A DNA stretch of 64,000 nt from Camelus ferus. Taxonomy: Eukaryota. Shown here piece by piece: positions 7,133 to 59,559 of the stretch (position 1 is its first letter; every line of letters starts with the position of its first letter). The stretch spans positions 19,964,001 through 20,028,000 of the forward strand of contig NC_045711.1 of assembly GCF_009834535.1 (NCBI RefSeq), in the 5' to 3' direction. The translations under genes and the position numbers were made by a program. Under the pieces are notes generated by a model that had not been told where the DNA came from, searched no databases, and worked only from the letters and a program-made list of their open reading frames with translations.

Positions 7133-24350
<17,218 letters not shown>

Positions 24351-33223: not shown

Positions 33224-33500
33224 GGGGACGGGGCGGGATGGGGGACGGGGACGCAGTGACGCGGGGGACCGGGGTCCGTGCAGACAGCGGCCCAGAGAGC
33301 GAGCGCGCCGCTGCCAAGGCCGCTGTCAGCGGGTCCGCGGGCTTCCAGCGCCCCAGGCTCCCAGCGCTCCGGGCTGGTCCGCCTCCCAGGGGTGGGTCGG
33401 GCAGTGCAGTTAGGAGAGCGATCTCCGCCCACGATCTCCGCCCACCGGTGGGCCAGGCGGTGTGCAGACCCAGCCCTGAGGGACGTTGAGAGGGAGGAGC
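32850..33500. promoter_or_regulatory. CpG island / promoter of FN3K
   Basis: CpG-rich over exon 1; GC boxes, including a duplicated cgatctccgccca at 33419-33444. Confidence 0.75.
33083..33223 (-). CDS. FN3K: FN3K exon 1 (141 nt coding)
   Basis: [25 protein letters not shown] donor. Confidence 0.96.
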
Positions 33501-36500: not shown

Positions 36501-37092
36501 ATTATGGAATAAATCGCTTTTCTACATTAAAAAAGTGAGAATAATTTTAAAAAGGTAGGAATTAAAATGATTTTTTTAAATGTCATAGTCCTCTCTTCCT
36601 CCCTACAAAAGCCAGAACTCTGAAGGCACCAGCTCCGCTTCTGAATCCCACTGAGGGGCTCTGACCTGCAAACAGAAACAGGGAGAAACGAATGCAGGCT
36701 CCCAGGCCCGCCCCGCTGAGACACTGTGTCCCCTCTGACACTGGCGTTCTCCAAGCCTTAAGCCAGAACCAAAGGTGGCCACCAATCTGCTTCTTCCCTG
36801 AAGCGGAACTCCACAGTCGCTTTCAACCTCCGTTCCTGCTGACCAGATCTCACGGCGACAGGACAGCAGTTCGACTGGACCCGAGTCAGGCAGCAGCAAG
36901 TCCTCAGGCCACCGCTGCGCTGACCCTGAAGACCCCCGCCAGTCTCTGTTGAATAAGGCCTAGAAAAGCAGCTGAACCCATGTGTCATCACAACATGTTA
37001 CAAAGGTTTCTTGGCAAACAGCTAAGATACACATTGAATTATGATTTAAATGAGGGAAATACAGTCTCATGAATCACTGAAACCACTAAAAA

Positions 37093-37098
37093 TTTATT
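37093..37098 (-). terminator. Candidate FN3KRP polyadenylation signal AATAAA
   Basis: tttatt about 630 nt downstream of the stop codon; an alternative lies at 36252-36257. Confidence 0.45.
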
Positions 37099-37724
37099 CA
37101 AATGTTTATGCAAAAGGATTTATAAGCATCACTGCCATTCATGGATACGTCTCACTACCACAAGACCGGCGGCAGGAAACACGCTGGCTTAGCGCTGGTT
37201 TCTAAGATGACAATTCACAAGCTTTAGAGGTCACCCGCGAAAGGCTGCTGACAGCTCCTAAACTTATCAGGGACACCCTGAGGCTAGCGGTTTGGTCCCT
37301 CCCAGAACCCAAAGGAAAGGGAATGTGCCCGGGACTGGTCCTCTCAAGGCTCCCATGGCTTCCCGTCCAGGCCTGTGTCTGCCCCATCGAGAAGCCAGAA
37401 CAGCAGTCCCTCCCGGATAGGAGACACGCCCCCCGACCCCCGCCTGCGGGGCAGTTGCGTGGGGGTCGGGCCCATGCTCCACGGGTCCCTGTGTTCACGC
37501 CAAAGTTCTAGGGCAGTTTTATACAGCTATGAAGCCTGTTGAAATGCACCTTTTGGGGACAAGACCCTTCTGGGCTGCTCTGTGCTCCACAAGACCTGGA
37601 ACGTGGTCTGAAGCTCCCTAGGGGTGAGGAGAGGGCAGGTCCCCGGCAGAGGCTGCACGGGAGCGCGAGGCCAGCACAGGAATCTCGTGGGACCCGGGAC
37701 GGGGCCTCCCTCAAGGGACACAGC

Positions 37725-38063
37725 TCATCGGACAAGATCCCTCATGATGCTGAGGGAGGAGCCTCGGTACCCTGACCCGAAGTGGTTCCAGTGGTTCAGG
37801 TGGTGAAACAGCTGGTACAGCTGGAGGCGCTGCTGGAAGCCAGGGGCCCGGGGGATTTGGCGGTGGTAGGCGGAGTAGAAGTTGCTGCTGAAGCCCCCAA
37901 ACATGCCAGCAATGGCCAGCTCGTACTCTGAGTGGCCGTAGAAAGAGGCCGGGTCAAAAATGATGGGTCCCGAGGCATCCTCTGCCACGTTTCCTCCCCA
38001 GAGGTCTCCGTGGAGCAGGGCTGGGACAATGTCCAGGTCACGGAACAGGTCGGGGATCTTGAG
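37725..38063 (-). CDS. FN3KRP: FN3KRP exon 6 (339 nt coding)
   Basis: [54 protein letters not shown]. Confidence 0.97.
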
Positions 38064-41000
38064 CTGTGGGGGAAACACAGCCTCAGCAAAGTGACCAGCA
38101 GTGTGGGGGACACAGGGGCTTTTCCAAGTGCGGCTGCCCGATCCGAGCAGTGTCTGGAGCACAGGTGCCCATGACGCACGTGGCCCAGCTGGGCAGAGGG
38201 ATGCCTCCTGTCCAGACTCAGACCCGTCCAGGCTGCACCGACCTTGACACCACCCCGGTGGGGCCAGGGCACGTGCGTGCGGGCACCGGCGCACACTCAC
38301 CTGCAGAGCAGACCAGAGCTCACGGGCCTCCCTGTCCCCAGACCCCCGCTCCAGCATGTCTATCTGGGGCTGGATGCGCTGCCGGGCGTAGAACGTGACC
38401 CAGTCCTGCTGCCAGTCGTTCACCTGTGCGGGCAACACGGAGCTCAGAGGAAACCACCAGAGCTGAAGGAGGTGCCCGGGGAAAGGTTAGCCATCGGAGA
38501 CGCCACTGCAGGGACATGTGAGGAGTGGAGCTGGCCGAGCAGCCTGGTCTCAAGGACGTGCCGGGACCTCAGATCCCACCCCAAGAGCAGCAGGGTCCAC
38601 TATGAAGAGCCCAGGGACATTTTCTCTCAATCCAGTCACTCAGACACAGAGCCAGGACAGGCAACCCTCCCTGACCCCATGGCTCATTTCTGACCATCCA
38701 GCCTCCACAGAGGACCCTCCTCCTTGGGCCCTCTGAGCACCGCCCTCCCAGGGAGGGAGGAGGGGAGGGCTACCACAAGAGAGGACGGCTGGCCTCAGGT
38801 GCTGACATCCAGAAGGGAGACGAGACAAGCGCACACAAGAGTAGCACCACACAGGCCACAGCGTGACTCTCACCACACATAAACACACGAGCAGTGACCC
38901 CAGAGCAGCAGGACCAGGAATCCCAACTCTCAGCCACTCACTGCCCCAAGCAGGGCCCCAGACAACCTCCTGCAACATATCAAAATCTGAACGGTATCTC
39001 CCCACCCGGTAGATTACTCACTGCCCCCACCTGAGAAGCCACCAGCCTGTCCACGTGGGCGAGTACAGCTCCCCAGGCTGAAACCCCCAGGGAAGCCAAC
39101 CACAGAATCATAAAACTCAAAGTCACAGTCCCTTTTCACTGTGCTACCTCTGAGAGTTTCCTATTTAAAATAAAACATTGTCTAACCTTCTATTTTCACC
39201 CACCTTGAAATCCAGCACCCTAACCTGCCGGTCCTTCTCTGCTCTTCTGAGTTTACCCAGCACAGGAGGCGGGTGCGCCTCATGTCAGCCTCTTAAAATC
39301 AGCAAAGGGAAAAAAGGAGCAAAGCCTTTTACTGAATTTCACGGAAAAGGAGGATGGTGTGCTTTCTCTGGCTGTTTCCGAACAGCTGGCCTGACTGGGA
39401 AATGGAGGCAAATGCCGGTGTCACTCACCTGGGGGAGGTATCCGCAGCATGTCACCACATCGAACCCAAACTGGTCCACAAATGGCCGCTCCACCCGCTC
39501 AGCTCCCTTCCCTTGCAAGTGAAAGGAAACGAGAAAGGTGACCGTCCCGTGCTCCCACAGGCCCGCTCTTGGAGCTCAGAGTAGCTTTGGGGCCTGACCC
39601 CAGGGTGCCCTTTCCCACCAGGCGTCCCCACCCAGAGACAAACAAGGGCCCTGACCTCTACCGACCCTCAGGCCCTGGGAACAGAACCTGTCCCTTCAGA
39701 CTGAACAGTCCAGACACCCACTCCTTCCCCGGAGAGGCATCAGCGGACGCTCAGAGGAGCCACAACACTGTCCAGAAAAGAGGGGAAATCCACTGGTGAC
39801 CCACCAGGAAAGGACGGCTCTCAGTGGCCGGTCCCGCACCTGCCGCCTGTGGGAGACAGACTGCTGGGCTGGCGCGTGGTCTCATCCTCTGCAGCTCCCC
39901 AAGCTCGGAGCGCAGCCCGAAGGACTGGTCCGTAGGGCTCGGGATGGACAAGGCCTGCCTGTCTGTCTAGCACAGCCGATCCTTGGTCACCTGTTCCCAG
40001 TGCGCCAGCTACTCTGGCCAGCAGAGCGGCCACACGGGCTACACGTGGATTATCAAATGTCAAGGACCCAGACGACACCCTCAGTGCTAGCACCACAGTA
40101 AACTCTGAAAAGGTCGGACAGGAGGGCTCCCCTGCCGAGCCTCACGCCTGACTGTTCTCAGAAGAGAAGGCATGGAAAGCCGGGGGAACTTTGGCAGGCT
40201 TGCTTCTGAGCGACAGGTCAAAGGAACCGTAATGCGCCAGGGCCTCGAGTTAAGGAAATGTCTCGTCTTTCACCTGCACTTTCAGCACAGGGCCTAACTG
40301 CGCTCACTGCGCCCCAAACACGTAGTGGGGGGACACGCCTTTCCTCGGGAAGCAACACAGGTATGACGGCCCACGGCGGCAGCCAAGGCCCACCCGCACA
40401 CCCAGCCTGGCCAGACGTCCTCCGGGAGGTCATCAGGCCCCGGGCCATACCCACTGTGCCGGCCTCCTTGTGGAGGGCCTCCCCACGCCTCCTGTTCTCC
40501 AGGTGCAGGTCCGCCAGCTGGGCTCCAAGCGTGGCAGCGTGACTGTGGGACCAAAGGCAGCCACTCAGCGCGTGACACAAACAGGGACACCCTCCATCTG
40601 GAAGGTCATGGGCACACCAAGTGGTGAGGCACTGGGGACATGAGTTTGTCCTGGTGAAGCCAGGGGGAGACGGAGGGCCCCATCTGAGCCAGTAGCCGGG
40701 TGCCAGTCATGTCTCACCTGGAGGGCCCTTTCCTGTTTGTCTTTGGCTCGATCACGTCTCTCAAAATTATACCCCCAAATACAAGCTCTCCACTGGGGAA
40801 AACAGAGCCCCCAGGGAGGCGCCAAGACGCACCTACTGAGGCTCTGCATGTCCAGATGCTCCATCACCAGCACGCTGCCGCCCCCCGGGGCCTCCAGGAC
40901 CTTGATGGGCTTGGGCACCCTCACTGTGCCCGTCTCCAGGATGGCAGTCAGACTCGCCATCTCCCCCTCAAACATTCTTCTGGCCTGTCAGAGAAATAAC

Positions 41001-44000
41001 AGAGGACAGAGAACAAGGTCTCTTTCAGAAAAGTCCTCTCGGCATCGCAACTGTAAATCAAGGCTTCCCGGCTTCAGACTCACTGGGCACGGACGGCTTG
41101 TCTGCCTTCAGCAGCACAGACTCTCGTTCTGAAGCTGTATGGGAACTAGAGGCATCGTACTGTTCAGTAGTGTATGTTTCTAAGCTATCACTGGTTCCGG
41201 TCTCCTCAGAGGGAGGAGAGTGTGCTGGCTCAGAGCTGGACTGTTTCTGGGTCGCCCTCAGACAGCACCTCCACCACAGTGCTGTCCCACCTGGGCCCTC
41301 ACCTGCCAGGAACCTGGAGTCACTTCTCACCCAAATGGACCACCAAGTCCCATGGCATGTCCTGGATGGACCCAACTGGAGCCACCTCACCTCGACCACA
41401 TTCTCAGTTTCTAGTCCACAAGTCCTTGTTCCCCTGCATGGGAGCAACCATTCTCCACCTGGTCTCTGCTTGACATACCCGAGTGATGCTTTTGGAAGGC
41501 AAATTCCACCATGCAACACACCCGAGCTGGCGTCCCTGCCCACTTCCCCGTGTAACCGCCCCACAGGTTCTGGTTCCAGCCCACTTTCCTCTGCTGTCTG
41601 GGCCTCCTGGGCCCCTCCCCAACACTGACAGAGGCACACACGCCCTAAGAGTTCCCCTTCATTCCCCAAAGACCCCCTGCCTGCTCCCACCTAGCCGCCT
41701 TCACATGCCATGTCGCCTCCGCTTAGAACACTCTTCCTCCTTTTGCCAAGTCAGCCCCTGCCCAGTCGGGCTTCAGATTCCAATTTAACATCAGCTTTGA
41801 TTTCTCAGAGAAATCTTCCCTAACTCACCAAGCTAGGTAATTCCTCCTTTTAAAATATTTTTTTTTCAAATAAAAATGCTACAGAAGTACATGAAAAAAA
41901 ACCCGCACAACTAAGCAGCATCCAGAATTCCAGTTCTCCCACAGTCAGCACGCCCACAGGACTGCCACCCAGATTAGGACCGCCACCACTGCCCGGAGGA
42001 TCCCCAGCCCCCCCAGGCGCTGCCGGCGCCCCCAACGGCGGGGCTATCTGTCTGCTCATCATTGGCACGGAGGCAGATGGCCAGGCCTGCCTGGTCCACG
42101 CCACACCAGCAGTCAGTGCTTCTCACCGCTCCCCGGAGCCCCACTGTGTGAACATCCCAACCAAATCCATCCAGTCGGCTGGGCCTCCAGTTTGGGGTCA
42201 CTACAAACAGTGCTGCCACGGGCGTTCTACATCACAGTTACTAACCCTGTAACCCTGGCTTCCTCACCTGTAAGATGGGTTAGCAGTAGTACCTGTCTCA
42301 CAGGCTGGCCGCCATAATTAACTCAGCTAGCAGCTAACACCTACACAGTCGTTCTGAACACTCCACAGGTATTATTACTACACAACCCTGGAGAGCTAGA
42401 GTTGCTGAGAAACAAGATGTCTTTTCTTTTTTTTTTTTAAATGTAGGTACTGGGGATTGAACTGAGGACCTCATGCATGCTAAGTATACGCTCTACCACT
42501 GAGCTATACCCTCCCTCCAAGAACTGTGTCTTAAGGAGAATTTTCAGAGCATTCTCTTTAGAAGACAAAGAAACACAACTGGGCCCTGGCTGTACTTTGT
42601 ACTAAAGCACTGGTTGAGCAGCGTAAAGTAAGGGACAGAATTTTTTAAACTTTTTAATTCAAAAAAAAGAACATGTGGGGAGAGGTGAAGGAGGATCTGT
42701 GCACCCAGGTAGAGGCAAGGCTCCCTCACGGTGATGTGCACAGGTCCAGAGCATCTAACTAGACCCAAGAACACTGCTCCTCAGTCGTCACCATCACTGG
42801 GGGTGCAGGCTGCAAAAGATCCAGACCCTGAGGGAGGAATGTGTGAGAAAACACAGCCTGCAAAGGAAAGATGAGTGAAATCAGGAGGAAAAACAATGCA
42901 GATCAGGCCACTGAAGCAGAGAGTGAGGTAGAAACAGAAGACCAGGTGGTTCTCTTACAAGTGGGGAAGGGGACGTTCTCGCCTCCTAGGAAGTAAAGCA
43001 GGAAGAGTCCTATCTTCCCTATGACTGGCAAATGTTTATGCCGTGGCTGGTGCATCTGCACAACTCACACAGCATGTTTCAGAGCCAACTAGAAAAAGAC
43101 ATGGTTGAAACTGTCTACCAGAGGAGTAGAAGGAACTTCTGTGATGATTAACAAAAAGGAAATGGACTTTGGTGACAAAATAAAAAGCAAGAACCCGAGG
43201 GAACAGCAGCAGAAGAACAATGTTTAAAAGGCATCACTGAGTAGTTCCATTTAATCATTAGAAAATATCTGCTTCCCTATAATCTACACCAAGTTTTTAC
43301 TATTACAAATGCTGATCAGAGTGGAAACACAAACATGAAAGGGACTAACGCCACAAAGAGGAAAAGAATCCAGAGGAGGACTGCGGTGGGAAGGAAGGAA
43401 GGAAGGAAGGAAGGACGCCACCACTGCATTAGCACTGCTGGGGGAAGTTGGTTTAAAGAGTGACTTCAAGGACCACTAGCTGCCACATTCCTACAGAGGG
43501 ACGTGCAGGGTGACACAGCAGCCCATTTCTGTAGAACAAAGGTTGAAGGTTGGTCCTGAGAGAACAGTAGGGTTTCAGAAAGAGATCATCCCACACCACA
43601 GAAGGTGGAATTCATTTCTGGGAAGGAAATGAAAATACCTGCAAGAGGATTTCCAAAAAGGAGACAAGAGCACCGAGCACCGAGGCCATCCTGGGCCTCC
43701 CAGCTGACAGTCCGGAGTGAGCCACCAGAACTGGATGAAGAAGTGACATCAACACCCAGGAGTAGGCATTTCAGCAGGGAGGCTCACCCAAGTTCTACAG
43801 GAGCCCTTGAGAAAACGTTTAGATACAGAAGGGGGGCGTGGCTGACACCCACGCAGTGTGTTGCCCCCCCCCCCAATCATTCGGTGAAACCTAACCCCCA
43901 CAGCCACAATGTTCGGAGGCTGGGCCTTAGGAGGTGACTGGGCCGTAGGGGTGGAGCCCTCATGTGGGGATTAGAGCCCCGTGCGACCTCAGAGAGCTCT

Positions 44001-44763
44001 CTTGCCCCTCGGCCAGTGAGGACTTGGGGAGACGTAGCCTCTGCATCTGTCCAGCCTCCAGACTCCGAGAAAGACATGTCTGTGCTCTAAGCCTCCCGGT
44101 CTGTGCTGTTCTGTTACAGCAGCCCCAGCGGACCAAGTCGTGGCTAGATTACTTTAATATTCAGAAACGGCTTTGATCTCTGAAAATTCAAATAACCCCC
44201 AGGACAACAGGCTGCTACCACCTGTCCTTGTTCAAAACTCGCCAAGCAGAATGGACTTTCTCAAAGGAGCGGGCACATGGAATGCGGGAAAGCCGTCCGC
44301 AGCACCTACGCGGCAGCGAGTCACGAGGCAGACAGGACCCGCGCTGACCTGGCACAGGGCGGAGCTGCGGTCCCAGAAAAACGCCAGGCCAGCCTGACGA
44401 CGAGACGGGCCACCAAGCGCCCGGGCGGCCGCGGCCCCGGGCTGGGACGGCCTCGCCCGCCCCGGACCCCGGGCCCAGACCCCGAGCCCGGACCGGCTCC
44501 CGACCCCAGACTCGGACCCCGACCCCGATTCCAGACCACCCTGGACCTCGAGCCCCCCCTCCCTTAGGCCGGCCCCGGGTCCACAGACCCCCGCCCCGCC
44601 CCCCGCGCGCGGCGGCCCTGACCTCCGCCTTGTGGTTCACTTTCACAAACACGCGCCCTTTGTCCGTGTCGTAGCTCTGACCCTGGCTGATGCAGCCGCC
44701 CCCCGAGTGACCCATGGCCTTGACGGAGCTGCAGCCCAGCTCCCGCTTCAGCAGCGCCTCCAT
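37725..44763 (-). CDS. FN3KRP: Ketosamine-3-kinase / FN3K-related protein, complete (6 exons, 930 nt, 309 aa)
   Basis: join(44623-44763, 40833-40984, 40451-40542, 39429-39511, 38301-38423, 37725-38063). Begins [28 protein letters not shown], contains HGDLWGGN, and ends IMRDLVR*. All introns are GT-AG. Confidence 0.98.
38301..38423 (-). CDS. FN3KRP: FN3KRP exon 5 (123 nt)
   Basis: [41 protein letters not shown]. Confidence 0.96.
39429..39511 (-). CDS. FN3KRP: FN3KRP exon 4 (83 nt)
   Basis: [27 protein letters not shown]. Confidence 0.95.
40451..40542 (-). CDS. FN3KRP: FN3KRP exon 3 (92 nt)
   Basis: [30 protein letters not shown]. Confidence 0.96.
40833..40984 (-). CDS. FN3KRP: FN3KRP exon 2 (152 nt)
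   Basis: [50 protein letters not shown]. Confidence 0.96.
42422..42515 (-). mobile_element. tRNA-derived SINE (vic-1-like) in FN3KRP intron 1
   Basis: Reverse complement reads gggagggtatagctcagtggtagagcgtatacttagcatgcatgaggtcctcagttcaatccccagtacc followed by poly(A). Confidence 0.88.
43388..43414. repeat. (GGAA)n microsatellite
   Basis: gggaaggaaggaaggaaggaaggaagga. Confidence 0.9.
43845..44140 (+). mobile_element. MaLR LTR (MLT1-type) in FN3KRP intron 1
   Basis: gaaacctaacccc..ggggtggagccctcatg..cagcctccagact..tgttacagcagccc motif order. Confidence 0.8.
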
Positions 44764-45200
44764 GTTCCCCGCGCCCGGGACGCCGACCCGCCTCAGGCCT
44801 CACGGAGACGCAGCGACAGCACAGGGGCGCGCGGGGATTGGGTGGGGGCGGGAGAGGCGGGACCGGGCCCCCAGAACGTGCGGGGATTGGGGGGGAGGAA
44901 AGGGGAGGGACCAGGCCGCGGAAGCGCTCGATGATTGGGTAGGCTGCGGGAGGGGCGGGACCTGGCCGCCGGGGGCGGGAGGGGATTGGAGGGGCGGGAG
45001 GGGCGGGAGGGGCGGGACCAGGACGCGGGAGCGCGCGGGGACTGGGGGAGGGGCGGGACGGCGTTGAATGGGGGCAGGGCCTGCTGTGTTCCCCACCCGC
45101 CGTGAGCCCCGGTGACCCTCCTCCCTGGGGCTCGCCCTGGCCTTTCCGCTGACCCTGTCTGTAACCTGCCCTTGACCTTGTGCGGCCCGCCCTTGCCTGG
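44200..45200. promoter_or_regulatory. CpG island / promoter of FN3KRP with repeated CCAAT and GC boxes
   Basis: ATTGG (CCAAT on minus strand) at 44837, 44886, 44934 and 44985; many GGGCGGG boxes. Confidence 0.85.
44623..44763 (-). CDS. FN3KRP: FN3KRP exon 1 (141 nt coding)
   Basis: [22 protein letters not shown] donor. Confidence 0.96.
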
Positions 45201-45409
45201 GGCACACTCCCTGCCCGGCCCCTCCTGGCTTCCCTCCTCACCTGTTGGGCTCCAGGTGAGAGCATCTCCTGTCACAGGATGGCTCCTGCAACACTTGCAG
45301 GGGTCCTATCTTTTCTGTTTGCACATGATTGTCCAATTGGCATCAATCCCCCCAACTAGACTCTAGTGATTTGAGAGCAGAATAAAGTCTGCCTTGCTCT
45401 GTCCACTGG

Positions 45410-45875
45410 AAAAAACTCACAAGCTGTAAGTTGAGAATTACATTTTATTGGGGGCATTACTGAGTACTTAAGCTTGGGGGTTGGGGGGGAGCCTCTCAGG
45501 TAGCTCTGAGGGACTGCTCGGAAGAGGTAAGGGAGGAGCCAGGATATAAAGGAGTTTCAACAAAATAAAAAAGTAGTCAAACATCAAAAGATTACTGCTC
45601 ATTAAAGAAACCAGACATCTTGAGTTACTGAACTTAGCACTTTACTATGTGTGGGAAGACGCAGGTGTGTGTGCTTAATGAAACCCTTCTTTTTTTTTTT
45701 TTTTTTTTTTTTGAAACCCTTCCTTTGATGTGCACATTAGCTGTCTGGGGCCAGTGTCCTGTTCTCTCCACCCTGAGTCCCCTCAGGGGCACCCTCGGGG
45801 CACTGCAAGGGCTGATAAATTGAAAGCCTCAACATCCATTGTTTACTGATACGCAGGCGGTGTTCTTTGTCCACA
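45410..45875. mobile_element. ERV LTR (ERV1-like, family unassigned) upstream of FN3KRP
   Basis: gcctctcaggtagctctgagggactgctc..gagccaggatataaaggagttt..aacatcaaaagattactgct..gggccagtgtcctgttctc recalled as a laurasiatherian ERV1 LTR pattern. Confidence 0.65.
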
Positions 45876-45889
45876 GCTCCCTGTGCCAG

Positions 45890-46770
45890 AAACCAAACCA
45901 ATCAGATGTATGTGTGTAGAGAGAGAGATTTATCTTAAGGAAACAGCTGTGAAAATTAATAAAGGGAAACCTCGTTTAAGACGGAGTAGGGAGGCCAGCA
46001 GGGAGCACTCTTACGCTGTCCACCCAGACACAGCCTGAAGGTAAAGACAGGGTCACCAAGTGCCACCACCCTGGGCCACTCACGGTCTATGACAGGGAGG
46101 ACTGTCAATTAAAGACTCCAACACGCAGAATCATCAACAGGAAAGAATCCTCCATTAGAGGCCTCACAGGGAAAGATGTTCATTGTGTCTCCTTCAAGAA
46201 ATCAACCACCCAGGCTACTCAGCCAATGAGAACCTGTCACCCCCAATTCCCACTTTCCACCAATGGACTTTTGTTCAAACGACCCCTCCAACCTTCTCCT
46301 TTTTCTCTGTAAGACGATGTTTACCTCTTTTGTTTGTTGAACTTGTCTGTGACCTTTGCTGTAGCTGGCTTGTCCCAAATTACAATTCTTTGTTGTTCCT
46401 CAGTCATCCATTTTGCTGGTAGAAATCGCTGGCTGTTGCATTGTTTTAGGTTAGCAGGGCTCACGCACTCGTGGAGGTGCAAGACCAAGGTCTGCAGGGC
46501 AGGCCCAAGGGCTGGAGGCCCAGGAGCAGTTCTGCTGGCAGGACTCCTTCCCAGGGGGTCCATGTTTGCTCTCTTCAGGCCTTCAACGGAGCAGACCAGG
46601 CCCACCCACACTAGGATGGGTGATCGCCTTGCTCAAAAGTCCACTGATTTAAATGTTAATTTAATCTAAAATACACTTCACAGAAACATCCAGAATAATG
46701 TTTGATACCAAATATCTGAGCACCTTGCCCCAGTCAAACTGACACATGAAACTGACTACCACATTCCCCA
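45890..46770 (+). mobile_element. MLT2 (ERVL) LTR, interrupted by the solo LTR at 45948-46457
   Basis: gagagagatttatcttaaggaa..ctgcagggcaggcc..ggccttcaac..aggcccacccacac..aaatgttaat..cacagaaacatccagaataatgtttga..ccagtcaaactgacacat. Confidence 0.8.
45948..46457 (+). mobile_element. ERV1-type solo LTR inserted within an MLT2 LTR
   Basis: TG...CA termini; CCAAT boxes (cagccaatgag, ccaccaatgg); splits MLT2 between aaggaa and ggctcacg. Confidence 0.6.
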
Positions 46771-46824
46771 TGTTTCCCCGTGCTTAGCACGATGCACAAT
46801 GCCAGTCTTGTCGGGGACATTCAA

Positions 46825-47122
46825 TAAGAATGCGGGAAAACATCAATATCGCTAATTGTCAGAGAAATGCAGACCAAAACTACAATGAAGTAGCACCTCA
46901 CACCAGTCAGAATGGCCATCACTCTAAAGTCCACAAATGATAAATGCCGGAGAGGCTGTGGAGAAAAGGGAACCCTCCTACACTGCTGGTGGAACTGTCA
47001 TTTGTGCAGCAACTATGAAAAAAAGTATGGAGGTTCCTTTAAAAACTAAAAATAGACTTACCATGTGATCCAGCAATCCTACTCCTGGGTACATATCCAG
47101 AGCAAAGTCTAACTCGAAAAGA
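46825..47122 (+). mobile_element. LINE-1 ORF2 3' fragment abutting an assembly gap
   Basis: agagaaatgcagaccaaaactacaatgaag..caccagtcagaatggcc..ggagaaaagggaaccctcctacactgctgg. Confidence 0.9.
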
Positions 47123-47283
47123 NNNNNNNNNNNNNNNNNNNNNNNNNNNNNNNNNNNNNNNNNNNNNNNNNNNNNNNNNNNNNNNNNNNNNNNNNNNNNN
47201 NNNNNNNNNNNNNNNNNNNNNNNNNNNNNNNNNNNNNNNNNNNNNNNNNNNNNNNNNNNNNNNNNNNNNNNNNNNNNNNNNNN
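47123..47283. other. Assembly gap (161 N)
   Basis: Run of N. Confidence 1.
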
Positions 47284-47510
47284 ATGTCAGGGCCGAGGCT
47301 CCATCCGCATGAACCAGTGGTGGGGGAGCAGGGGGCCAGGGCATGTGGTTGCCAGCAACGGGGAGGGGGGGGGAGTCACCTTCCAGCACAGGATGCCCTG
47401 CGAGTGGTCAGGTGGGCTGACAAGTGGTGACTGGCTGCTGTCTGCTGGCACCCTGACAGGTCCAATGGCCACTAGGGGCGTGGAGTTGTCAGTCCCACCC
47501 CCATGTGAGT

Positions 47511-47575
47511 GAGTGTCCTGGGGCTGCCATGACAACTTACCACAAACCATCTGGCTTAAAACAACAGAAATAGCT
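47511..47575. mobile_element. MLT1 LTR fragment
   Basis: ggggctgccatgacaacttaccacaaaccatctggcttaaaacaacagaaat. Confidence 0.65.
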
Positions 47576-47827
47576 TATTTTGTTTACAAATAGAGGAACC
47601 TGAGACACAGAAGTGTATATTTTTCACATCATGTAACATGCAGTTGGAATATAATATTCAAATTCCTCAGTTAACATGTTCAAAAACGTGTGCTCTGTGG
47701 AAACCTATTGTGACACAACACGGCTGTCACTGTTTTCCTTTGTGTAACTTGTCAGGTTACAGACAAAGAGGACAAGATCTGTATTCACTGAATCGGGTTG
47801 ATGCAGCAAAACGCCGCTCTTCCAAAT

Positions 47828-47985
47828 CAGGGTTTCTCCCCCTGGAAACCAGTGCCACTTTGGATGGCTGCCCTCCACGGAGGGGCATCTGCGTGCTGTG
47901 GGTGTTGGGCAGCGTCCCTGGTCTCCCCTCCAGATTTTGCCAGATGTCCTGGGGCGGGGGCAAAATCGCCTCCAGCTGAGAAGGA
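47828..47985. mobile_element. MER20-like hAT DNA transposon relic
   Basis: cagggtttctc..ccagattttgccagatgtcctggggcgggggcaaaatcgcctccagctgagaa. Confidence 0.7.
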
Positions 47986-48586
47986 AGCACAGTTCTCAGA
48001 GAGCTACTTGTTAGGACCCTGATTCTCAGAGGAGCCGAAGCCCTGGGTCACTTCTTCTGTCAGACCCTCAGGGAGTTGAGGGGTGTCCCGACTGCATGGG
48101 GGGAGCAATTCTCTGGGAGCCCCGTTCTTTCTGAGCAGGGAACTTGACTCACAAAACGAACAATGTAGGGGAAGCGTGAATGACAGCATCTGCCTTGTGA
48201 GCGAACTCTCCACCACGTCTCTGTAAAGCTGACAATGCATGTTTTGATGTCAGCTGCACAGGTGAGAAGGCAGGTCTCCTGAAGCCCTCGGTGTCCAACC
48301 CCAGGAGCGAGGTCATGTTAGTCCAGGGGAGACTTCACCAGCCTAGGGGAGACTTTGAGGGAGAGATGGTAGGAGTCTCAAGTTTAGGGATAAACTGAGT
48401 TAAAGGTGATGAAAGTAGGATGGTCCACCTCCAATTGCTGCACGTGGGCCCAGGGTGGGAGGCTCAGCCTAGACTGCTGGTCCAGCACCCGCCCCAGAAT
48501 CCCGAGAGGAGGGCAGACAGGCTGCCCCTGGTCGGCGCTGTGCCCAGGACAACACAAGATAAACTGGTTTTCTTTTCTGTCCCAAG

Positions 48587-48866
48587 TACTGAGCTTGCAG
48601 GACCTGTGCTTCCAGGCAGTGGTGTCCCGCACACCCGTGCACCTGGTGGACAAGCTGCCGCTCCCCTGGCCCTGAGGAGCCACCTCAAGTCCTCCTTGAT
48701 GGCTAAAGGCCTGAACGCCAGGATGATGCCGGCCTCTCCTACTCCCTCACTGCCAGCTCCCACCACAGAAGGAGCCACTCACAGGGAAGGGAAGGCTACC
48801 AACCCACCCTGGAGCCACCTCCTCCCCAGCGCTGCCCTGGTGGTGGCTCCAAGGCTCTGTCTCTAA
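48587..48866 (+). pseudogene. RAB40B: RAB40B relic: decayed last exon (SOCS box and C-tail) with two frameshifts; upstream exons not found
   Basis: After the acceptor tggttttcttttctgtcccaAG the sequence reads (V)[26 protein letters not shown], then a 1-bp shift to [20 protein letters not shown], then a second 1-bp shift to GLSYSLTASSHHRRS. This matches the recalled RAB40B end ([64 protein letters not shown]). It lies at the syntenic RAB40B position and on the same strand as WDR45B. Confidence 0.9.
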
Positions 48867-48892
48867 ACTGGATTACAGGTGAAAGGATGCCT

Positions 48893-49035
48893 TTTTTTTT
48901 TTTTTAAAGGGGGAAGTAATTGGATTATTTATTTACTTACTTATTTGTTTGTTTGTTTGTTTAGATGGAGGTACTAGGGATTGAACCCAGGACCTTGTGC
49001 ATGCTCAGCACATGCTCTACCACTGAGCTACACCC
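48893..49035 (-). mobile_element. tRNA-derived SINE (vic-1-like) just downstream of the RAB40B relic
   Basis: A and B boxes, (AAAC)n and poly(A) tail; TSD tgaaagga(t/c)gcct at 48880-48892 and 49036-49048. Confidence 0.9.
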
Positions 49036-49869
49036 TGAAAGGACGCCTCTTTCCGAGAAGGAGGTGGAGGCCGAACGTGCGGCCTCGTGGAGCAGCCACC
49101 TGGGGCGAAGCAGCAGGAGGTGCCGTGGGCCCCGGGGGACTGGGCTGCCACCGCTCTTCAGGAGCGACACGTGGAAACCAGTGCTGTCTTTGCTGAGACG
49201 CCCGGCAGGGTGTCCCTTCTTGGTTCTGCTGCTTGAGTATCAACGAGGGATAAAAGAATAACTTGGAGAGAAAAGCAAATGCCCAGACCTGCTCAGTTTC
49301 TGTTAATGACACAGATTTTTGGAGCTTTAAGGACTCTAGAATTGGGAGTGACACCTTTATTCAGAGATGGCGGAGCCAAGGTCCAGGGAGGAGGAAGGGA
49401 CAGACATCCATTGGGAAGTAGGCAACGGGACAGCAGGTAAACCAGAGTGACGGAACCTCTGCAAGGGGCTGTGGGCCTGGGAGGACTTGCTGCTGGAGCC
49501 AGGGCTCCCTTCTCTGCTGGGCAGTGGATGGAGTGAGCAGCCAGGGGGCTGACCCACTGACCACACCACTAGGACACTGCTGTGGTGGGGTGACACTGCC
49601 CTGAGTGCCACCAACAGAGACAAGGAGAGGCCCACGCTGAGCACGAGCCCCTCCCCAACCTTGAGGGGTGCTCAGAGGTAGAAGGTGCAGGCCCCCCAGA
49701 CCTGATGGTGGGCGCCTAGCCTCAGGGCTAAACCAGGCCCTCCCCTTCTATCTCTTTCCGTGGTTTAACTGGAGGTCTCCTATCAACGTCCCGGAAGGAA
49801 CGGGATAAAGTTCCCAACCCCTTGTCCCGGAGCCCTTCCAAAAGCCTGGTGTCCAAGAGGCCTCATCAC

Positions 49870-50040
49870 AGACAAAGGATACCTGGGGCCACCAGAAGCT
49901 GGATGAGGCAGGAAGGATCCCCCCAGAGCCCTGCCCACACCTGGATTTCAGACTCTGGCCTCCAGAACTGTGAGAGGCAAATTTCCACTGCTTTAAGCCC
50001 CCCAGTTTGTGGCCATACGTGGTGCCAGGACACTCTCACA
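49870..50040 (+). mobile_element. MLT1 LTR 3' part
   Basis: ccaccagaagctggatgaggcaggaagga..cccacacctggatttcagactctggcctccagaactgtgaga..ctttaagcccccagtttgtgg. Confidence 0.8.
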
Positions 50041-51425
50041 ACAAAGAAATGTTACACTTCGCAGTAGAAAGTGGTATTGCTAATCAAAGTGGCATTTCTG
50101 TAAAATAAAAAGAAACCCTAATATAGAATGTATTAAAGTGCAACTATGCATGTTTTCGTGGCGAGCACCCAGAAATCACAATTGAAACGTAAACTGAACC
50201 TTAGAGAAGCCGCTCTCAAAATTCATCATTTTCTTCTATGGCCTCACTGCTGGGAAAATCCACCCAAAATATAAACGGGAGCACCAAATTGTGTCCCAGC
50301 TGTTTGTAATTCTCTTTTCAAGCATCTAGATTCAAAATAAATTATGTACAGTTATGTCTTCAATTGCCCTGTGACAACTCCTGCAAAGCAGAATAATTTC
50401 CTAGACAGAGAGCTTCAACTGTGATGAGGAGTGATCCGGGCAAACACTGAATTTTGGAGAAAATGTTTATTACAGGCTTGATGATACTTGTTTTACCAAA
50501 GACACGGAGATGCAGAAGCTCCCCTTTCCCAGAGAAACCCTGTCATCTAAGCAGATGTGGATTTGAGAAGTGGGCCTGAATGAAGCTGCTTGTGCGGGGG
50601 AACCGGGGAGAGGCCCCGAGTCGTCGAGCAGTCGAGCTGTCGTGGGGGTGGGACCCTGTGCTCACTGTGTTCATCCCCTGCCCTGGACGTACATGGACTG
50701 CAGGTGTCTGGGTGGGAGGCGGAGGTAGGACGGGCACAGTGAAGGTGGAGACCAGAGGGCTCGCTGGGCAAGGGGCTCAGGGCCGGACGCTCCTGCCTCC
50801 GTGGCCGCTAGTGTTAGAACAGGACCGCATGCCGGCTCCTCCTTATCCGGTGACGGGCCTTGTCCCGGAGCTGTGTGTCCCGGCGGCTCTGTGTGTCCTC
50901 GCGGGAGAGTCTATACATTCATTTGACCCTCGGACAACGCAGGCGTTAGGTGCAACGACCCTCCACACAGTCACAAATCCGCGAGTAACTTATAGCTGCC
51001 GGCCCATCCGCCGGATCTGCTGTTCTGCAAACGCGGATCCAACCAACCACGGTCGTGCAGTCTGTGGCGTTTTCCATGAAAACACTCCGCTGCTGAGAGG
51101 CCCCGCGTTGTCCAGGGGCACCGGTACTCCCATTTGCCCACTTCTGTCCACTTTGCTGTTTTTGCCTACATTGTACTAGCGTATCTGTTAAAAACCCCAT
51201 AATGCACTGTTGTTTTTACAGAGATACTGATGGATACTTTTACCAGTTAAAAATGAAAAGGCTCTTACATTTACTTTAATTTCCCTGATTTCTGGGAGGG
51301 CTCAGTTACCGTGGGCGTCTGGGTCCTGTCTGCTCCTGAGGGTCCCTTTGAATCGTCGCCGCCCTGGGGCTCAGTGTCCTGGGGGTCTGCTTCGTCCCCA
51401 GCAGGTGGTTCCCGCCCTCAGGCCC

Positions 51426-51470
51426 GCCCCGCCCCGCCCCGCCCCGCCCCGCCCCGCCCCGCCCCGCCCC
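51426..51470. repeat. (GCCCC)9 pentamer in the WDR45B promoter
   Basis: Read directly from the sequence. Confidence 0.95.
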
Positions 51471-51730
51471 CGCAGACGAGGTCCCGCCCCCAGGCCAGGC
51501 CCCGCCCCAGGCCGCCCCGCCCCGTGGACGTGACGCTCTCGGCGCTCGCTCCCTGCCCTGCCGACCCCGGTGGATGCTCTCGGCGCTCCGCGGCTCCCTG
51601 GTTGCGCGCGCAGGCGGTGGGCCTCTTGCTTCCGGCCGCGGCGGCCTCGGCGCTGGCGAGACGGACCCCGGCGGCCGGCCTCCCCGAGCGGCATGCGGCG
51701 CTGAGGCGCGGCGAACCCCGCGGCGGCGCC

Positions 51731-51797
51731 ATGAACCTCCTGCCCTGTAACCCGCACGGCAACGGGCTGCTCTACGCCGGCTTCAACCAGGACCACG
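51731..51797 (+). CDS. WDR45B: WDR45B exon 1 (67 nt coding)
   Basis: GCCATG Kozak context, GTGAG donor at 51798. Confidence 0.96.
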
Positions 51798-54700
51798 GTG
51801 AGGAGAGCCCCCGGCGGCCCGGCCCTCCTGCCGCCGCCGCTCCGCGCGGGGTCCCGCCCCTCGGCCGGTCGCGCCCCGGGCGGCGTCCGCACCCGGGCCT
51901 GGCTGCTCGGAGCCCGCCCCGGCCCCCCGCTCCGGGCCGCGCTCCCGCCCGTCCGACGGGGAGGGTGTTTTCCGGGCGGCTGTCGGGCCTTTCCGGCTGG
52001 GTCGGGGTCTTAGCCCTCGTGGCGCCGCGCCCGCGCGCCCGGGACCGCGTCCGCCGAGGTCCTCGCCTTTTCTGTGGGCCTGGATGGAAAGCGTCGCCGG
52101 ACGCACTCTCTCCTTGTGCCGAGTGGAAATTGAACTGTCCAGCACGCCGCTGGGGACAAGGCAGTTTTCGCGTTTCCGAGTCGGGCGGGACGCGGGGCCG
52201 CGCCCCACGTTCACCCGAGAAGGGGACTCGCGTCTCGGCTGCTCGACTTCGCTTTGGAAGCTGCGTGAAAGAGAACCCCAAAGGAGGAGCCGCAGGACCC
52301 GTGTTTGTGGGGGTGGTTTGGGGAGATTTTAGCAGAGCGGGAGCGGGTCGCTTTGGCTCTTGGGGTGCTCACTCCGAGGTTCTGACTGTGGCGTCCCAGG
52401 AGCCGAGGCGAGGCGGCCTTTTCATTCCGGGAGGAGCCCTGAGGTCAGGAAGGGTCCTTGGAGGGGCGGGGCTGGGCTGGGCTGGGGACCGCCAGCGCTT
52501 GGTCCCACTGCGGGGCCTGCGGGGTGCGCCTTGGGGGCCGGATGTTGGACCTCGGGCAGTGTGTGGCCGAAGACTTTGGCGCTTGATTTCCTGAGGAGGG
52601 CCAGTAGGTTTCTCTTCTTTTCTTTCTTTCTTTTTTTAAAACAAGTTTTGGTAAAATTGAGAACTCTTTAAGGAGTAAACAGCGATATAGCAACTCCTTA
52701 AGAAACGTGCTTTCAGTAGACGTGGCTGGTGATAGTAATGGAGGGGAGAGGCAACTCTGAAAAACACACACAGAAGCAAAAAGCTTATTGACTCCGGGGC
52801 CATTAAATGCAAAATCTTTTACATCTGCGTTAGTGCCAAACGAGGGACCTTTGTATTAAGTTTCAGCGTAAAAATTGAGTCACAGGATGATGCTAATTAT
52901 TTTGGAAACCAGTGAAGTTTATAACGTCTTTATAAAGTTCCCATCAAAGATTATTTTAAAAGTACAGCTTTGGCTTTTAAATGGATATATTCCGTTGTCT
53001 GAAAACTCTGTTTTCACTTTCCTAAAGCCACGTTATTTCATTGCAACAAATAACAAGTAAAGCTTATAGTACTGTTGAAAAAAACATGCTTTTATACTTA
53101 AGCTTCTGGTTACTGTTAGGTTAATTTCCTATAATGTAAATTTATGCTCGATTGTTGAGTTTATTACATTTTGTTTTTACTTATACTGATTTTTAATTTT
53201 TACTTAGCATTTTTCACACTCTTGTTGCAACTTCAGGTTAAGAAATCATTTTTAAAAGAACATTTGCTCATAATTTTAAATTGTTCAAACTTTTGACTGG
53301 TTTTCTCCTAACGATAATGTGCATTACAATTTTCAAGATTCCTGCATGTTAATATGAACATTTCTGTCCTCGGGGTGCCTGCTTCTCTTTCTCTTCCCAT
53401 GGGAGCCCCGAGTGTTTGATTACATACACCTTCCCTGTTCACTGGCTTGTCCTGCCTGGACCAAGCCTGGGGCCACAGGCTGACCCGGTGGGCAGGCTCT
53501 TCTGTGGTTCTGGAGTATGGGTGAGGAGTATTTGCATGTGGATTGCACGTGCTCACGTGGAAGGGTGCCCTTCAGTGATTCTGATGCTCTGTTGCCAGGC
53601 GGCTGCCCCAGGGGTGTGCTTGGCATCAGCTGCTGGGTTGGGACTTTTCTGTGGGAAAAACTTGTTCAGAGAGCAGGAACGGGAAGATTAGTGCCAGCTT
53701 CTGTGTGATAACCAAGTAAAGTCAATTGATCAATCCCTCCCATCAAATAGCGAGGATAATCCCCAGCCTCCGTGGAGAGTGGTTTCCAGTCTTCTGTTGT
53801 CTATAGGGCCCTTTCTTGTAGCTTTTGCGTGAAGTACAGTGTTCTTACATAAAGTGCATGTGTCCTGAGCACTCAGCCTGAGGAATTTTCCAACTGAACA
53901 CATCTTCTATGGCACCCAGGTTAGGAACCAAACACCCACCATCCTGTGCCCCTTCCCGCCACCCCTCAATCTAACGTCCAACGACCTAGATTAGTTTTGC
54001 CTGTCTCTGTACTTTATTTCTGTTTCTTGCTTTTTTACTCTGTCATGTTTGTGAGATTTTTTCCATGTTGCTGAGCGTAACTGTAGGTCGCTGTCATTAA
54101 TGTGATGTTTCTTTGTGACTGTGTCACCGTTCGTGTATCCATTCTACCATCGGTGTGCATCGGGTGGTTTCCAGTTTGGGGCTGTTCCGAGCATAGCGGT
54201 GCTTCCACGAGTGCTTGCAGTGTCTTCCCTGAACACAGATCTTTGTCCCTGGGGCAAGTGCGCCTAGGGCAGCACTGACAGCCTGCTGGCACGGACAGCT
54301 CCACTGGCTGCAGCACTTCACCTGCCTCCAGCAGGCCCATGCATCCCCGGGCCTCCGCACCCACCGCGCCCGTGGTATTTTCCGGCCTGTTGGCCGTTCT
54401 GGTGGATGCGCAGTGGGTCTCACTGTGGTGCCTGTGTGGCTGTGTCTGTGTTTTCCTGACTCAGTGTCTTTACTGACCGTTTGGATGCTCTCTTCTGTGA
54501 ACCGTCCAGGTCTTTTTGCTTGTTTTTCTATTGGGCTCCTCTGTCCAGATTACGTGGTTCCAGTAAACAAAGAGGGAGTTACAGCCCAGAGTAAATTAGA
54601 GATAGTGAGTGACACCTCACTCTCCAGTGAGTGTCTGACTGCAGGCGCAAGTAAAGTGCACCTCAGAACCTGAGAGCTGATCGTGCAACAGTCTCCCCTC

Positions 54701-55771
54701 CTGGGGAAGCGGCCTGGTCGTTGTGGTCTAATAAGTAACTTGGACAAAAAATAGAAACATGCTTTTCACATTGGGAGGGTGGCTGATAGGATAGAGTAGT
54801 GTGGTCCCAACGCTGGAACGTGGATCGGGACCAGAGGAGAGACCCTGAGGGCGGCTTTGACAGTCAGACCTGTGGAGCGGTCGCGCTGTGAGGGGCCAGG
54901 CTCTGCAGCCTGTCCTGTGAAGATCGTTGGAGGGTTTGGTTTTTCTCCTTCCAGCTACAAGCCTCATTGAATCAGCACTTGGACATGGTGACATTTACGA
55001 AGATTAACGTGGTCTTGGTCACACTTAGGGAATGAAGTCCAGGTCACAGGACCATCTTGAAGTTTGAGTGTCTCCATCAGTTCCTAATGGTGCCTTCAAC
55101 TGAACCATGAACAGTCTGTTGTGTGAACTGGGATGGTGACTCCTGTGCCAGGTTCAGGGAGTCAGGGTTAGTGACAAGGGGGAGTAAGGTCATAGAGACC
55201 TCAAGCTGCCTTCTGAAAGGCCATCCCGTTGTGGCCCGTTTCCCCTTCCCCACTGGGTGTGCCCACACCTTCTGGGGTTGCGTGCTTTGTGGCTGTCCTC
55301 CAGGAGATGGGGGCGTCCTTGTTTGTCGCTGCGCCTCTAGGACTTGGTACCTGACACAGCCCGGCAGAGATGTGTTGGGAACTGAGAGGCCTGTGTGAGC
55401 ACCAGAGGCAGCACTGGAGGGAGATGCCAGGCGGCAGAGTGGCTGGTGCAGGTGGCTGGAGTTAGGGGTGGGGCAGAGCCTGGTGCCCCACAGGGCCTGG
55501 TGGGGGAGGTGGAGCCAGACTGCGAAGGCTCCTTTTGCTGGTATGCGCACAGCCTCTGACCCCAGTGTAGGGGAGTCGTTTGTGTGGTGGAGGGGCCGCT
55601 TCCTCTGGACCCCCTGCTTGTGCCGCTCAGGCCTGGGGAGCCCGTCGTCCAAGCTGAGAGCCCAGCGAGGTGCTTACCGTGTGTCTCTCACTTTAGGGTG
55701 CTTTGCGTGTGGGATGGAGAATGGATTCCGCGTGTATAACACCGACCCGCTAAAGGAGAAGGAGAAACAAG
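51731..55771 (+). CDS. WDR45B: WD repeat domain phosphoinositide-interacting protein 3 (WIPI3), 5' part (exons 1-2; rest beyond window)
   Basis: join(51731-51797, 55697-55771) gives [47 protein letters not shown] with GT-AG boundaries. Exon 3 (EFLEGGVGHVE..) was not found before 64000. Confidence 0.96.
53880..54560 (-). mobile_element. Old L1M 3' fragment in WDR45B intron 1
   Basis: gagatttttccatgttg..ccagtttggggctgt..atgcttcca motifs. Boundaries approximate. Confidence 0.6.
55697..55771 (+). CDS. WDR45B: WDR45B exon 2 (75 nt)
   Basis: TTTAG acceptor, GTAAG donor. Confidence 0.96.
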
Positions 55772-57000: not shown

Positions 57001-59559
57001 GGGAGCCTGGCAGACACCCCATTGGTGCGTCAGTGTTTCTCTACGAGGGTGGTCCGTGGGCTAGAGTCACCTCCCGTCAGTCTAGCCGGCTTCTACTCTT
57101 TATTTTGTTCTCGTGGCATAGTGAATTAAAACAACTCTGCTTTATACAGAAAAATAGTTACAAAATATTTTGAGAAAGGTTAACTTGCAAATTTCAGGAT
57201 ACTTTTTACTTAAATTGACCCAGAAACCTAGTAGTTACAGACTTAAGTTTCGTGGAATCATTAGTAGCATATTAACAACTGTTTCTTAATTAATGAAATG
57301 TTTTTGATAAACCTTGGACTTCCTAGAAAAATAAGTCACAGTGCTGTGTGTGTTCCCTTTCCCTGCTTAGCTGCACTGCGTCTGGGGCAGGCACTTGCGA
57401 GCTCCTGGTGAATTTGACAGGGACCCGACGGGGCCATGCGGTGCTTACTGGTGGTGCATTTAAGAACCTCCTGTGTGCACTTGCAGGTTAGCTGCTGCTG
57501 CATTTCTGGTTGCTGACTCAACAGAAGAAGATCGGCAGAAGACTTGACCTTGTTCCTTTTTTATCTTTGAGCTTGCTCTCCTGAGCAAGGAATGAACTGT
57601 GCCTGCGTTGTGGGTTCATTCCCAGGTCTGAGCTTGTGGGCTCATCTCTGGGGTGCCTGTGGCTGTGAGAAGGGGCCTTGGTGATGGGTGGTGAGCAGGT
57701 GCCTCATGTGGGTATGCCCACCACAGCATGCGAGCCGGCAGTGCCGGGAGTTGTGTTGGGCATTCTGGGCCTGCTTGGAGGTAGCTTTCTCCTTTGAGGT
57801 GTCCTGTGTCTTGTGCTCAGAGCAGCACGGCCCTGCTCGAGGAAGGCGTGGAGCCCTGGGAGCACAGCTGTGTGTCCGTGCAGGGTGCTGCGGGTCTGGG
57901 TGTAGACTCACACACACCCCCCCCAAGCAGCTACTAGAAGGGAGGGTCGCATCATAATCTGAACACAGATGTGTCAGGGAGATACATCTGGATAAAGTGC
58001 TATATCCAGCGGTTGCAGAAATAAAGGAGTACCTGTAAAAAGTCGGTTCTGCTCTTCGTTCAGAAGCACAACCGTCTGAATCCCGAAGGTGACTGGAGCT
58101 GCTATAGCCACGGCTTGGGGAGCTTGCAGGGCACCAGTAGGGGCAGCGGGGTCCAGAGGCGTCCCCTGGTCTTCAGCAGCACTCACCTTCCCCTCTGTGC
58201 GGCCAGTGCTCACGCTCAGGACGATGGCAGCCACGAGCGGGGGCAGAAGGACCCTGAGGCCCGGGGGGGACGCTGTGACAGGCGGGGCAGCAGGCAAGGC
58301 TCTCCTTCCCGGGCCTCTGGGTTCTGCGTGGGATGCGGTGGTGAGGAAGGTGGGTGCCAGGTGTCTGGAGCCTGTTTCGTGTCCTCCTCGATCTGTCTGC
58401 TGCGCGGCCCATGCGGCCAGGGGCGTCTGGAGAAGCAGACATTGTGGAGCATGCCCACCTGCAGCAACTCGCCCGCGGCCCTCTAAGGACCAGCCCTTGG
58501 GGCCTGGGGCGTGGAGGCTCTGGTGGCAACCTCAGGCCTCCCTTTGGGAGACCCTGCCTCTCCAGCAGCAGGAGGTGGGGGTCAGACACCCTCAGGTGCT
58601 GTGGAAGGTGCTCTCTGGGGTGGTGGCCGCTGTGGGGCTGGGGCTTAGACATGCTCCCTGACTCTCCTGGATGTGGGGTCTCCCTTTGACTGCTTCTGCT
58701 CTTCCCCAGAAAGCCTCATGTGCCCATTTCTCTGCCTCTTCGGTTGATGCTGAGAAAGGTGCTTTATTTTTTTTTCTTTCCAGAGTTAAATCTCAGAGAC
58801 TGAAGGTGTTTACAGTGGTCAGACTGCTTGTTTGTCTTAACTCCTAACTCTCAACATCTTTGTAATCTTGATATTTATGTGTTTTTGAATTGCATCTGAG
58901 TCAGCCAGAAATAGGCACTAAGGTAAAACAAAATAGTTCTGATTTCATAAAATACTGGTTTTTCTCTTAGAAAGAGGCTTAGAGAAAAATTACAGACTGT
59001 ATCATTTAAATTAAAACTTTTAAAAAACTTTAAAATGGAACATATTATGCTTTTAACAGAAAATTTAGGTGATTTCTTCACGTGAGGTACTTCAGCTTAT
59101 GTTCTTCACACCCTGTCTGGTGGGTTCTCTGTCTGGGTCACATTTTGAGGCTGATGCCTGCTGGCCCGTCTTCATCCTCCTGTGAACGCGGTCACATCTC
59201 GCTAAGGGAGTGACTCACTGCTTTTAGAACCCGAGAAGACCTACGACGCTGACAAATCCAGCATTAATAAGTTTGAAGCCTCAGTGCTCACGTAGTGTTG
59301 TTTATAAAAGTATTAAATGTTCTCCTTTGGCTGGATCGTATTTAAAGAATATGTGATTACCTTTTGGTATGATTCACAGGTTTCTCTTAATAGATTTGAT
59401 TCTAGAACTTACTGAACCTGCAATGAGGAAATAGTTATACTCCTACTGGGTCCCACAATTCTTCGTCTTGCAAAACTGAAAGTCTGTCCCCATCAAACAC
59501 TGACCCTTCCTCCCCTAGACCATGGCAACCACCATCCTACTTTCTGTCTCTGTGAATTT

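Follow-up and report, generated by a model that had tools for sequence, protein, structure and literature searches.

RAB40B is a Rab GTPase whose SOCS box recruits the Elongin B/C-Cullin5 E3 ligase, and in the human genome it is placed in the order WDR45B-RAB40B-FN3KRP-FN3K-TBCD. Among the proteins to which Rab40B brings this ubiquitin ligase are EPLIN and Rap2, which regulate actin and cell migration (PMC8129794, PMC8931537). A 2023 review places Rab40B and Rab40C in the genomes of all vertebrates and lists among the open questions how far the two are redundant (PMC10509765). RAB40C, the vertebrate paralogue, has the same domain layout and also binds Cullin5, which makes it the obvious candidate for compensation. 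A human nonsense allele, RAB40B Y83X, has been reported in a family with axonal neuropathy; like the camelid case described below, it removes the SOCS box by truncating RAB40B (PMC10789172). Intact RAB40B of 278 aa is encoded by pig, ruminants, cetaceans, horse, carnivores and bats. A sequence-only reading of a 64-kb stretch of Camelus ferus DNA, which we analyse here in full and refer to as the window, had proposed that the gene is dead in the camelid lineage.

The genes flanking the proposed site were established by tblastn and by comparison with alpaca. FN3K lies on the minus strand from 33223 to 24954, and six FN3KRP exons, also on the minus strand, run from 44763 down to 37728, the minus-strand ORF 37728–38438 corresponding to the last exon of fructosamine kinase. 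The coding part of FN3KRP exon 1 (44623–44763, minus strand) forms the left syntenic anchor, with residues 1–47 of alpaca FN3KRP matched at 100% identity in tblastn. FN3KRP of the window finds its best named relative in alpaca FN3KRP (97% identity), and positions 36461–54848 are colinear, at ~95.5% identity, with the alpaca locus L001 of GCA_048564905.1; the assignment of the DNA to a camelid, made earlier from the letters alone, was therefore right, the species being one distinct from alpaca. The alpaca locus comes from an independent assembly (63-Mb record, zero N in 27 kb) and is ordered WDR45B, 6.9 kb without a called gene, FN3KRP and FN3K. The RAB40B remnant lies on the plus strand between FN3KRP and WDR45B, head-to-head with FN3KRP, which is the syntenic position of RAB40B; WDR45B follows it, as read through the colinear alpaca locus. 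The human-type succession anticipated for the site was thus recovered as FN3K, FN3KRP, RAB40B remnant and WDR45B. The distance from the FN3KRP ATG to the WDR45B start is ~6.9 kb in camelids versus ~52 kb in musk deer.

The remnant itself corresponds to exon 6 of RAB40B, which encodes the SOCS box and the C-terminal tail, and occupies 48587–48862 on the plus strand, as delimited by tblastn, DNA alignments and Pfam. Its match to RAB40B proteins is far beyond chance (tblastn E = 2e-16), and within RAB40B only residues 187–276 match the 64 kb of the window. The first piece shows 83–86% identity to the RAB40B proteins of pig, ruminant and macaque, compared with 72% to RAB40C, and a profile-free HMMER search with this 37-aa piece against 1.84 billion proteins returned RAB40-type proteins only, a further search providing full-length RAB40B, RAB40C and RAB40A for comparison; a PDB sequence search with the same piece gave no match. 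The Pfam SOCS_box profile is aligned over positions 1–31 of 39 and reaches 22.1 bits against a cut-off of 23.5 bits, where an intact ruminant exon 6 scores 33.9 bits. Both the BC-box SLQDLC and the Cul5-box LPLP can still be read in the entry frame. The flanking DNA also matches introns 4 and 5 of the RAB40B gene in musk deer, reindeer, horse and dolphin.

RAB40C was considered as an alternative identity and rejected, given its lower identity over the SOCS piece and the synteny of RAB40B. A second candidate arose from the stretch 48699–48745, which reads MAKGLNARMM.GLSYS and in which K and GLSYS match primate RAB40A rather than other RAB40B sequences; RAB40A is excluded by synteny, and these residues are accordingly taken as a coincidental parallel change. 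Synteny settles the orthology, and together with the intron homology and the higher identity to RAB40B it upholds the earlier assignment of the exon to RAB40B over RAB40C and RAB40A. A 148-aa ORF also spans the remnant (48420–48863); the only homologues that a protein search with it brought up were ORFs called off frame across exon 6 in other species, and no contigs encoding such a protein were found.

The exon retains its polypyrimidine tract and an intact AG acceptor ending at 48585–48586. Translation in the entry frame runs for 29 residues to a TGA at 48673–48675, directly after LPLP, leaving the SOCS box without a complete open frame; the second reading frame gives 20 protein letters and the third continues as GLSYSLTASSHHRRS.... 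Acceptor, frames and TGA position were all reproduced as first described. When exon 6 was aligned with that of musk deer, reindeer, dolphin and horse, four frameshifting indels (−1, −1, +1 and +5) became apparent, all of whose sites are present in camel and alpaca and none in any outgroup. The first is a 1-bp deletion between 48662 and 48663, its exact position ambiguous within a C run, which is identical in alpaca and yields the TGA. The second, also a 1-bp deletion common to alpaca, falls between 48729 and 48730 and affects the His codon that follows ARMM. A 1-bp insertion at ~48774, relative to ruminants, dolphin and horse, is again common to alpaca, and ~5 bases are inserted at ~48815–48821, where alpaca has +4, one base having since been lost. 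All four are on the plus strand. The exon had been described as doubly frameshifted: the two deletions were correctly placed and both are also found in alpaca, but two further indels in the tail had been missed. Because the net shift in the window is +4, the reading frame is never restored. Alpaca carries two private 1-bp deletions in addition to the common indels.

Substitutions have affected the conserved positions as well. Two conserved cysteines of the SOCS box are replaced, by Phe at 48610–48612 and by Arg at 48628–48630, as had been noted. In the DNA alignment with the outgroups, the C-terminal CAAX prenylation motif is absent from the remnant, again in line with the first description: the codon of the CAAX cysteine now reads TCC for Ser (48848–48850), and the position of the native stop reads TCT (48860–48862). 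As a separate observation, the dolphin locus (L006, 30333–30337) has a 1-bp insertion near residue 266 of exon 6, consistent with the 'LOW QUALITY PROTEIN' label given by NCBI; it falls in the same C-rich stretch as the camelid +5, and this tract thus seems prone to indels or to sequencing errors.

For the part of RAB40B upstream of exon 6, residues 1–186, neither a motif scan nor tblastn nor blastn with exon DNA gave a match in the 64 kb. A Rab GTPase domain (G1–G5 motifs, exons 1–5) is present neither in the window nor in alpaca L001, and tblastn found the GTPase exons absent from that gap-free locus, so the claim that these exons are gone is borne out in both camelids. All six RAB40B exons were mapped in four outgroup genomes; the musk deer reference is a composite of two overlapping loci that takes in FN3KRP, RAB40B with its six exons and the start of WDR45B. 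On the left flank of the first deletion, intergenic DNA at 45351–46832 forms colinear blastn blocks with 17223–19519 of this composite, which is FN3KRP-proximal intergenic sequence. Homology ends at musk deer 19519 (window 46832), RAB40B exon 1 of musk deer starts at 32532, and colinearity resumes at window 47328, equivalent to position 57095 of musk deer, which lies 49 nt inside intron 4. Relative to musk deer, ~37.5 kb are therefore missing (19519 to 57095), comprising 13 kb of intergenic DNA, the promoter, exon 1, the 22-kb intron 1, exons 2–3 and the whole or almost the whole of exon 4. A run of 161 N (47123–47283) holds or adjoins the right breakpoint. At the junction itself lies an interspersed repeat (46843–47102), which matches copies dispersed, in either orientation, through the RAB40B introns of horse and a single copy in the FN3K-FN3KRP region of musk deer. 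Repeat-mediated recombination as the origin of this deletion was unsupported, the junction repeat having no copy at the musk deer breakpoints.

The second deletion lies within the remaining RAB40B sequence. A remnant of intron 4 (47284–47570, plus strand) aligns by blastn to musk deer 57095–57330, to reindeer, to horse L005 32131–32309 and to dolphin L006 28342–28580, and is joined at 47570–47574 (plus strand) directly to intron 5. At this junction the horse, dolphin and musk deer alignments all jump; the horse coordinates pass from 32309 to 33575 and bypass exon 5 (32736–32957), and musk deer and dolphin agree. Exon 5 (222 nt, residues 115–188) is removed by this deletion, whose size is roughly 0.5–1.3 kb depending on the outgroup, and neither tblastn nor blastn found a trace of the exon in the window. 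The intron 5 remnant that follows (47575–48586, plus strand) aligns by blastn to intron 5 of four outgroups and ends in the intact acceptor. The statement that exon 6 alone survives thus holds for the exons, while parts of introns 4 and 5 and of the downstream region also remain. As read from these alignments, the exon loss arose through two separate deletions.

Among 267 ungapped coding columns of exon 6, parsimony places 38 substitutions on the camelid stem, distributed 13:14:11 over the codon positions; on the horse branch, nine of 13 substitutions are at the third codon position. Since the split, exon 6 has acquired four changes in the camel lineage and six in the alpaca lineage. Camel and alpaca differ by 4.0% in the exon, by 3.5–4.5% in the intron remnants and by 3.8% downstream, and this equality of exon and flanking intron divergence indicates neutral decay. 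By the same measure, exon 6 has been unconstrained at least since the camel and llama/alpaca lineages separated. The major lesions are common to camel and alpaca, which places the loss before the Camelini-Lamini split. In the tail of the exon (coding positions 185–270), 29 stem changes fall in 87 columns, too many for a base-by-base homologous alignment, so the date is not drawn more finely than that split.

Taken together, lesions common to two camelids, a neutrally evolving remnant and an intact orthologue in the outgroups agree with the proposal that RAB40B is a unitary pseudogene, the original copy having been inactivated in place with no functional duplicate next to it. We consider it highly probable, from the sequence comparisons, that inactivation took place in the ancestor shared by camels, llama and alpaca, through two deletions followed by neutral drift. 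The larger deletion, of ~37.5 kb, would have taken the upstream intergenic DNA together with the promoter, exons 1–3 and exon 4 in whole or nearly so, and the other, of ~0.5–1.3 kb, would have taken exon 5. The remaining introns and exon 6 would then have drifted neutrally, exon 6 gaining its four frameshifts and, as it decayed, losing the SOCS-box cysteines, the CAAX cysteine and the stop codon. The camelid locus can give rise neither to a Rab40B GTPase nor to a Rab40B-Cullin5 adaptor.

A tRNA-derived SINE has inserted close downstream of the remnant, on the minus strand at 48966–49035 (39.7 bits with the Rfam tRNA model); a poly-T run and a microsatellite of TTTG type come before it. Further on, an AT-rich block at 49875–50613 (plus strand) is 76–81% identical to horse, dolphin and musk deer and corresponds to a position ~2–2.8 kb downstream of the RAB40B stop codon in species with an intact gene. 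The camel–alpaca divergence of this block is 2.0% versus ~4% in its flanks, and by this measure it looks to be still under constraint despite the death of the gene. AATAAA motifs occur within it, and it might represent either an old distal 3'UTR turned regulatory element or part of another transcript. The reindeer locus has, between RAB40B and WDR45B, a called gene of 73 aa with the Pfam domain PP1_inhibitor (L003, 38383–41792). This call, which may reflect a retrocopy in ruminants or an error of annotation, falls inside ~4.6 kb passed over by the alignments with camelid and musk deer.

Three other explanations bear on how the locus is read. An artefact of assembly would have the missing exons hidden in the N run or collapsed and the frameshifts produced by sequencing errors, and the run at 47123–47283 does coincide with, or adjoin, the place where exon 4 would be expected. 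Between the same flanks, however, the alpaca assembly has exactly 161 bases, in which tblastn found no RAB40B exon; the best exon match there is 14 nt of exon 4 (13/14 identical), ~60 nt from its expected place, which may be chance. The five missing exons, which amount to at least 568 coding bases even before their introns are counted, could not be concealed in 161 bases, so that the intact exons 1–5 which might have been sought inside the gap are not to be found there, and the separate, gap-free alpaca assembly has the same structure as the window. Sequencing reads agree with it: contigs from DNA runs of three separate studies of one organism contain 100% of the sampled 31-mers of 48450–48900, and runs of two organisms hold 95–97% of the 31-mers of 47300–49300, an interval that takes in the deletion 2 junction and both frameshift sites first noted, the k-mers across these sites being present in short-read contigs from many runs. 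The artefact explanation is largely refuted, and we regard its probability as negligible. It is also very improbable, though somewhat less so, that the syntenic copy is dead while a functional RAB40B survives elsewhere as a duplicate or retrocopy and keeps the function. The family does produce retrocopies, RAB40A and RAB40AL being located on the primate X chromosome and RAB40AL being intronless (PMC10509765), but no camelid RAB40B protein appears among the named matches or the cluster members listed, and in alpaca no gene is called between WDR45B and FN3KRP. Camelid genomes are presumed to have no intact copy at another site.

The remaining alternative concerns the fate of the remnant rather than that of the protein: the exon might be reused in a non-coding or chimeric transcript, for instance one divergent from the FN3KRP CpG-island promoter, from which the exon with its intact acceptor lies 3.8 kb away. 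Such reuse is suggested by the intact splice acceptor and the conserved downstream block, which diverges between camel and alpaca at half the neutral rate, and is compatible with loss of the RAB40B protein. Six RNA runs hold 26–45% of the 31-mers of 48450–48900 (451 nt), and in two of them, X19 and X20, most of the k-mers held in a 2-kb stretch fall inside this segment around the exon. Judged by k-mers, the remnant region therefore appears in RNA, which a dead gene would allow; such k-mers could also come from retained pre-mRNA or from contaminating DNA, and the exon evolves at the neutral rate and still gathers indels. We consider reuse of the exon in a transcript rather unlikely. Somewhat more credit, although still tentative, is given to a broader reading in which camelids are an ancient, fixed RAB40B knockout whose dead locus is partly still in use, in a regulatory or non-coding capacity independent of the RAB40B protein, as the presence of the remnant exon in RNA and the 740-nt downstream block evolving at half the neutral rate would allow. 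Loss of the coding gene itself remains the favoured account.

Compared with RAB40B of other mammals, the camelid locus keeps the same position between FN3KRP and WDR45B, a homologous exon 6 with its flanking introns, and legible BC-box and Cul5-box motifs. It differs in lacking the promoter, exons 1–3 and 5 and the GTPase domain, with at most a 14-nt trace of exon 4 in alpaca, and in an exon 6 that carries four frameshifts, an early stop, two replaced cysteines and neither a CAAX motif nor the native stop. In an outgroup-intact gene that is dead at its syntenic locus, in lesions that are clade-wide and in its neutral decay, the case resembles other mammalian unitary gene losses; it stands apart in that RAB40B has been called present in all vertebrate genomes (PMC10509765). 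The human Y83X allele differs in leaving a truncated product that is expressed, for which its authors suggest a possible gain of function (PMC10789172), whereas the loss in camelids is complete and fixed and leaves no fragment of the GTPase that could be expressed. Our literature search found nothing relevant that links RAB40B with camel, alpaca or dromedary, or with 'gene loss', and no publication reporting the camelid loss came to light in it.

In kind, the event is a clean lineage-specific gene loss, a known type of event rather than a new type of biology, and its orphan last exon is easily missed or mis-called in annotation. It constitutes an exception to the presence of both Rab40 genes in all vertebrates. 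In camelids, the function of Rab40B would presumably be covered by RAB40C; camelid names are absent from the RAB40C cluster members listed, and the look-up of one common RAB40C sequence returned goat and RNA contigs only. A mammalian family that has been without RAB40B since before the camel–alpaca split would offer a ready-made test of the overlap between Rab40B and Rab40C.
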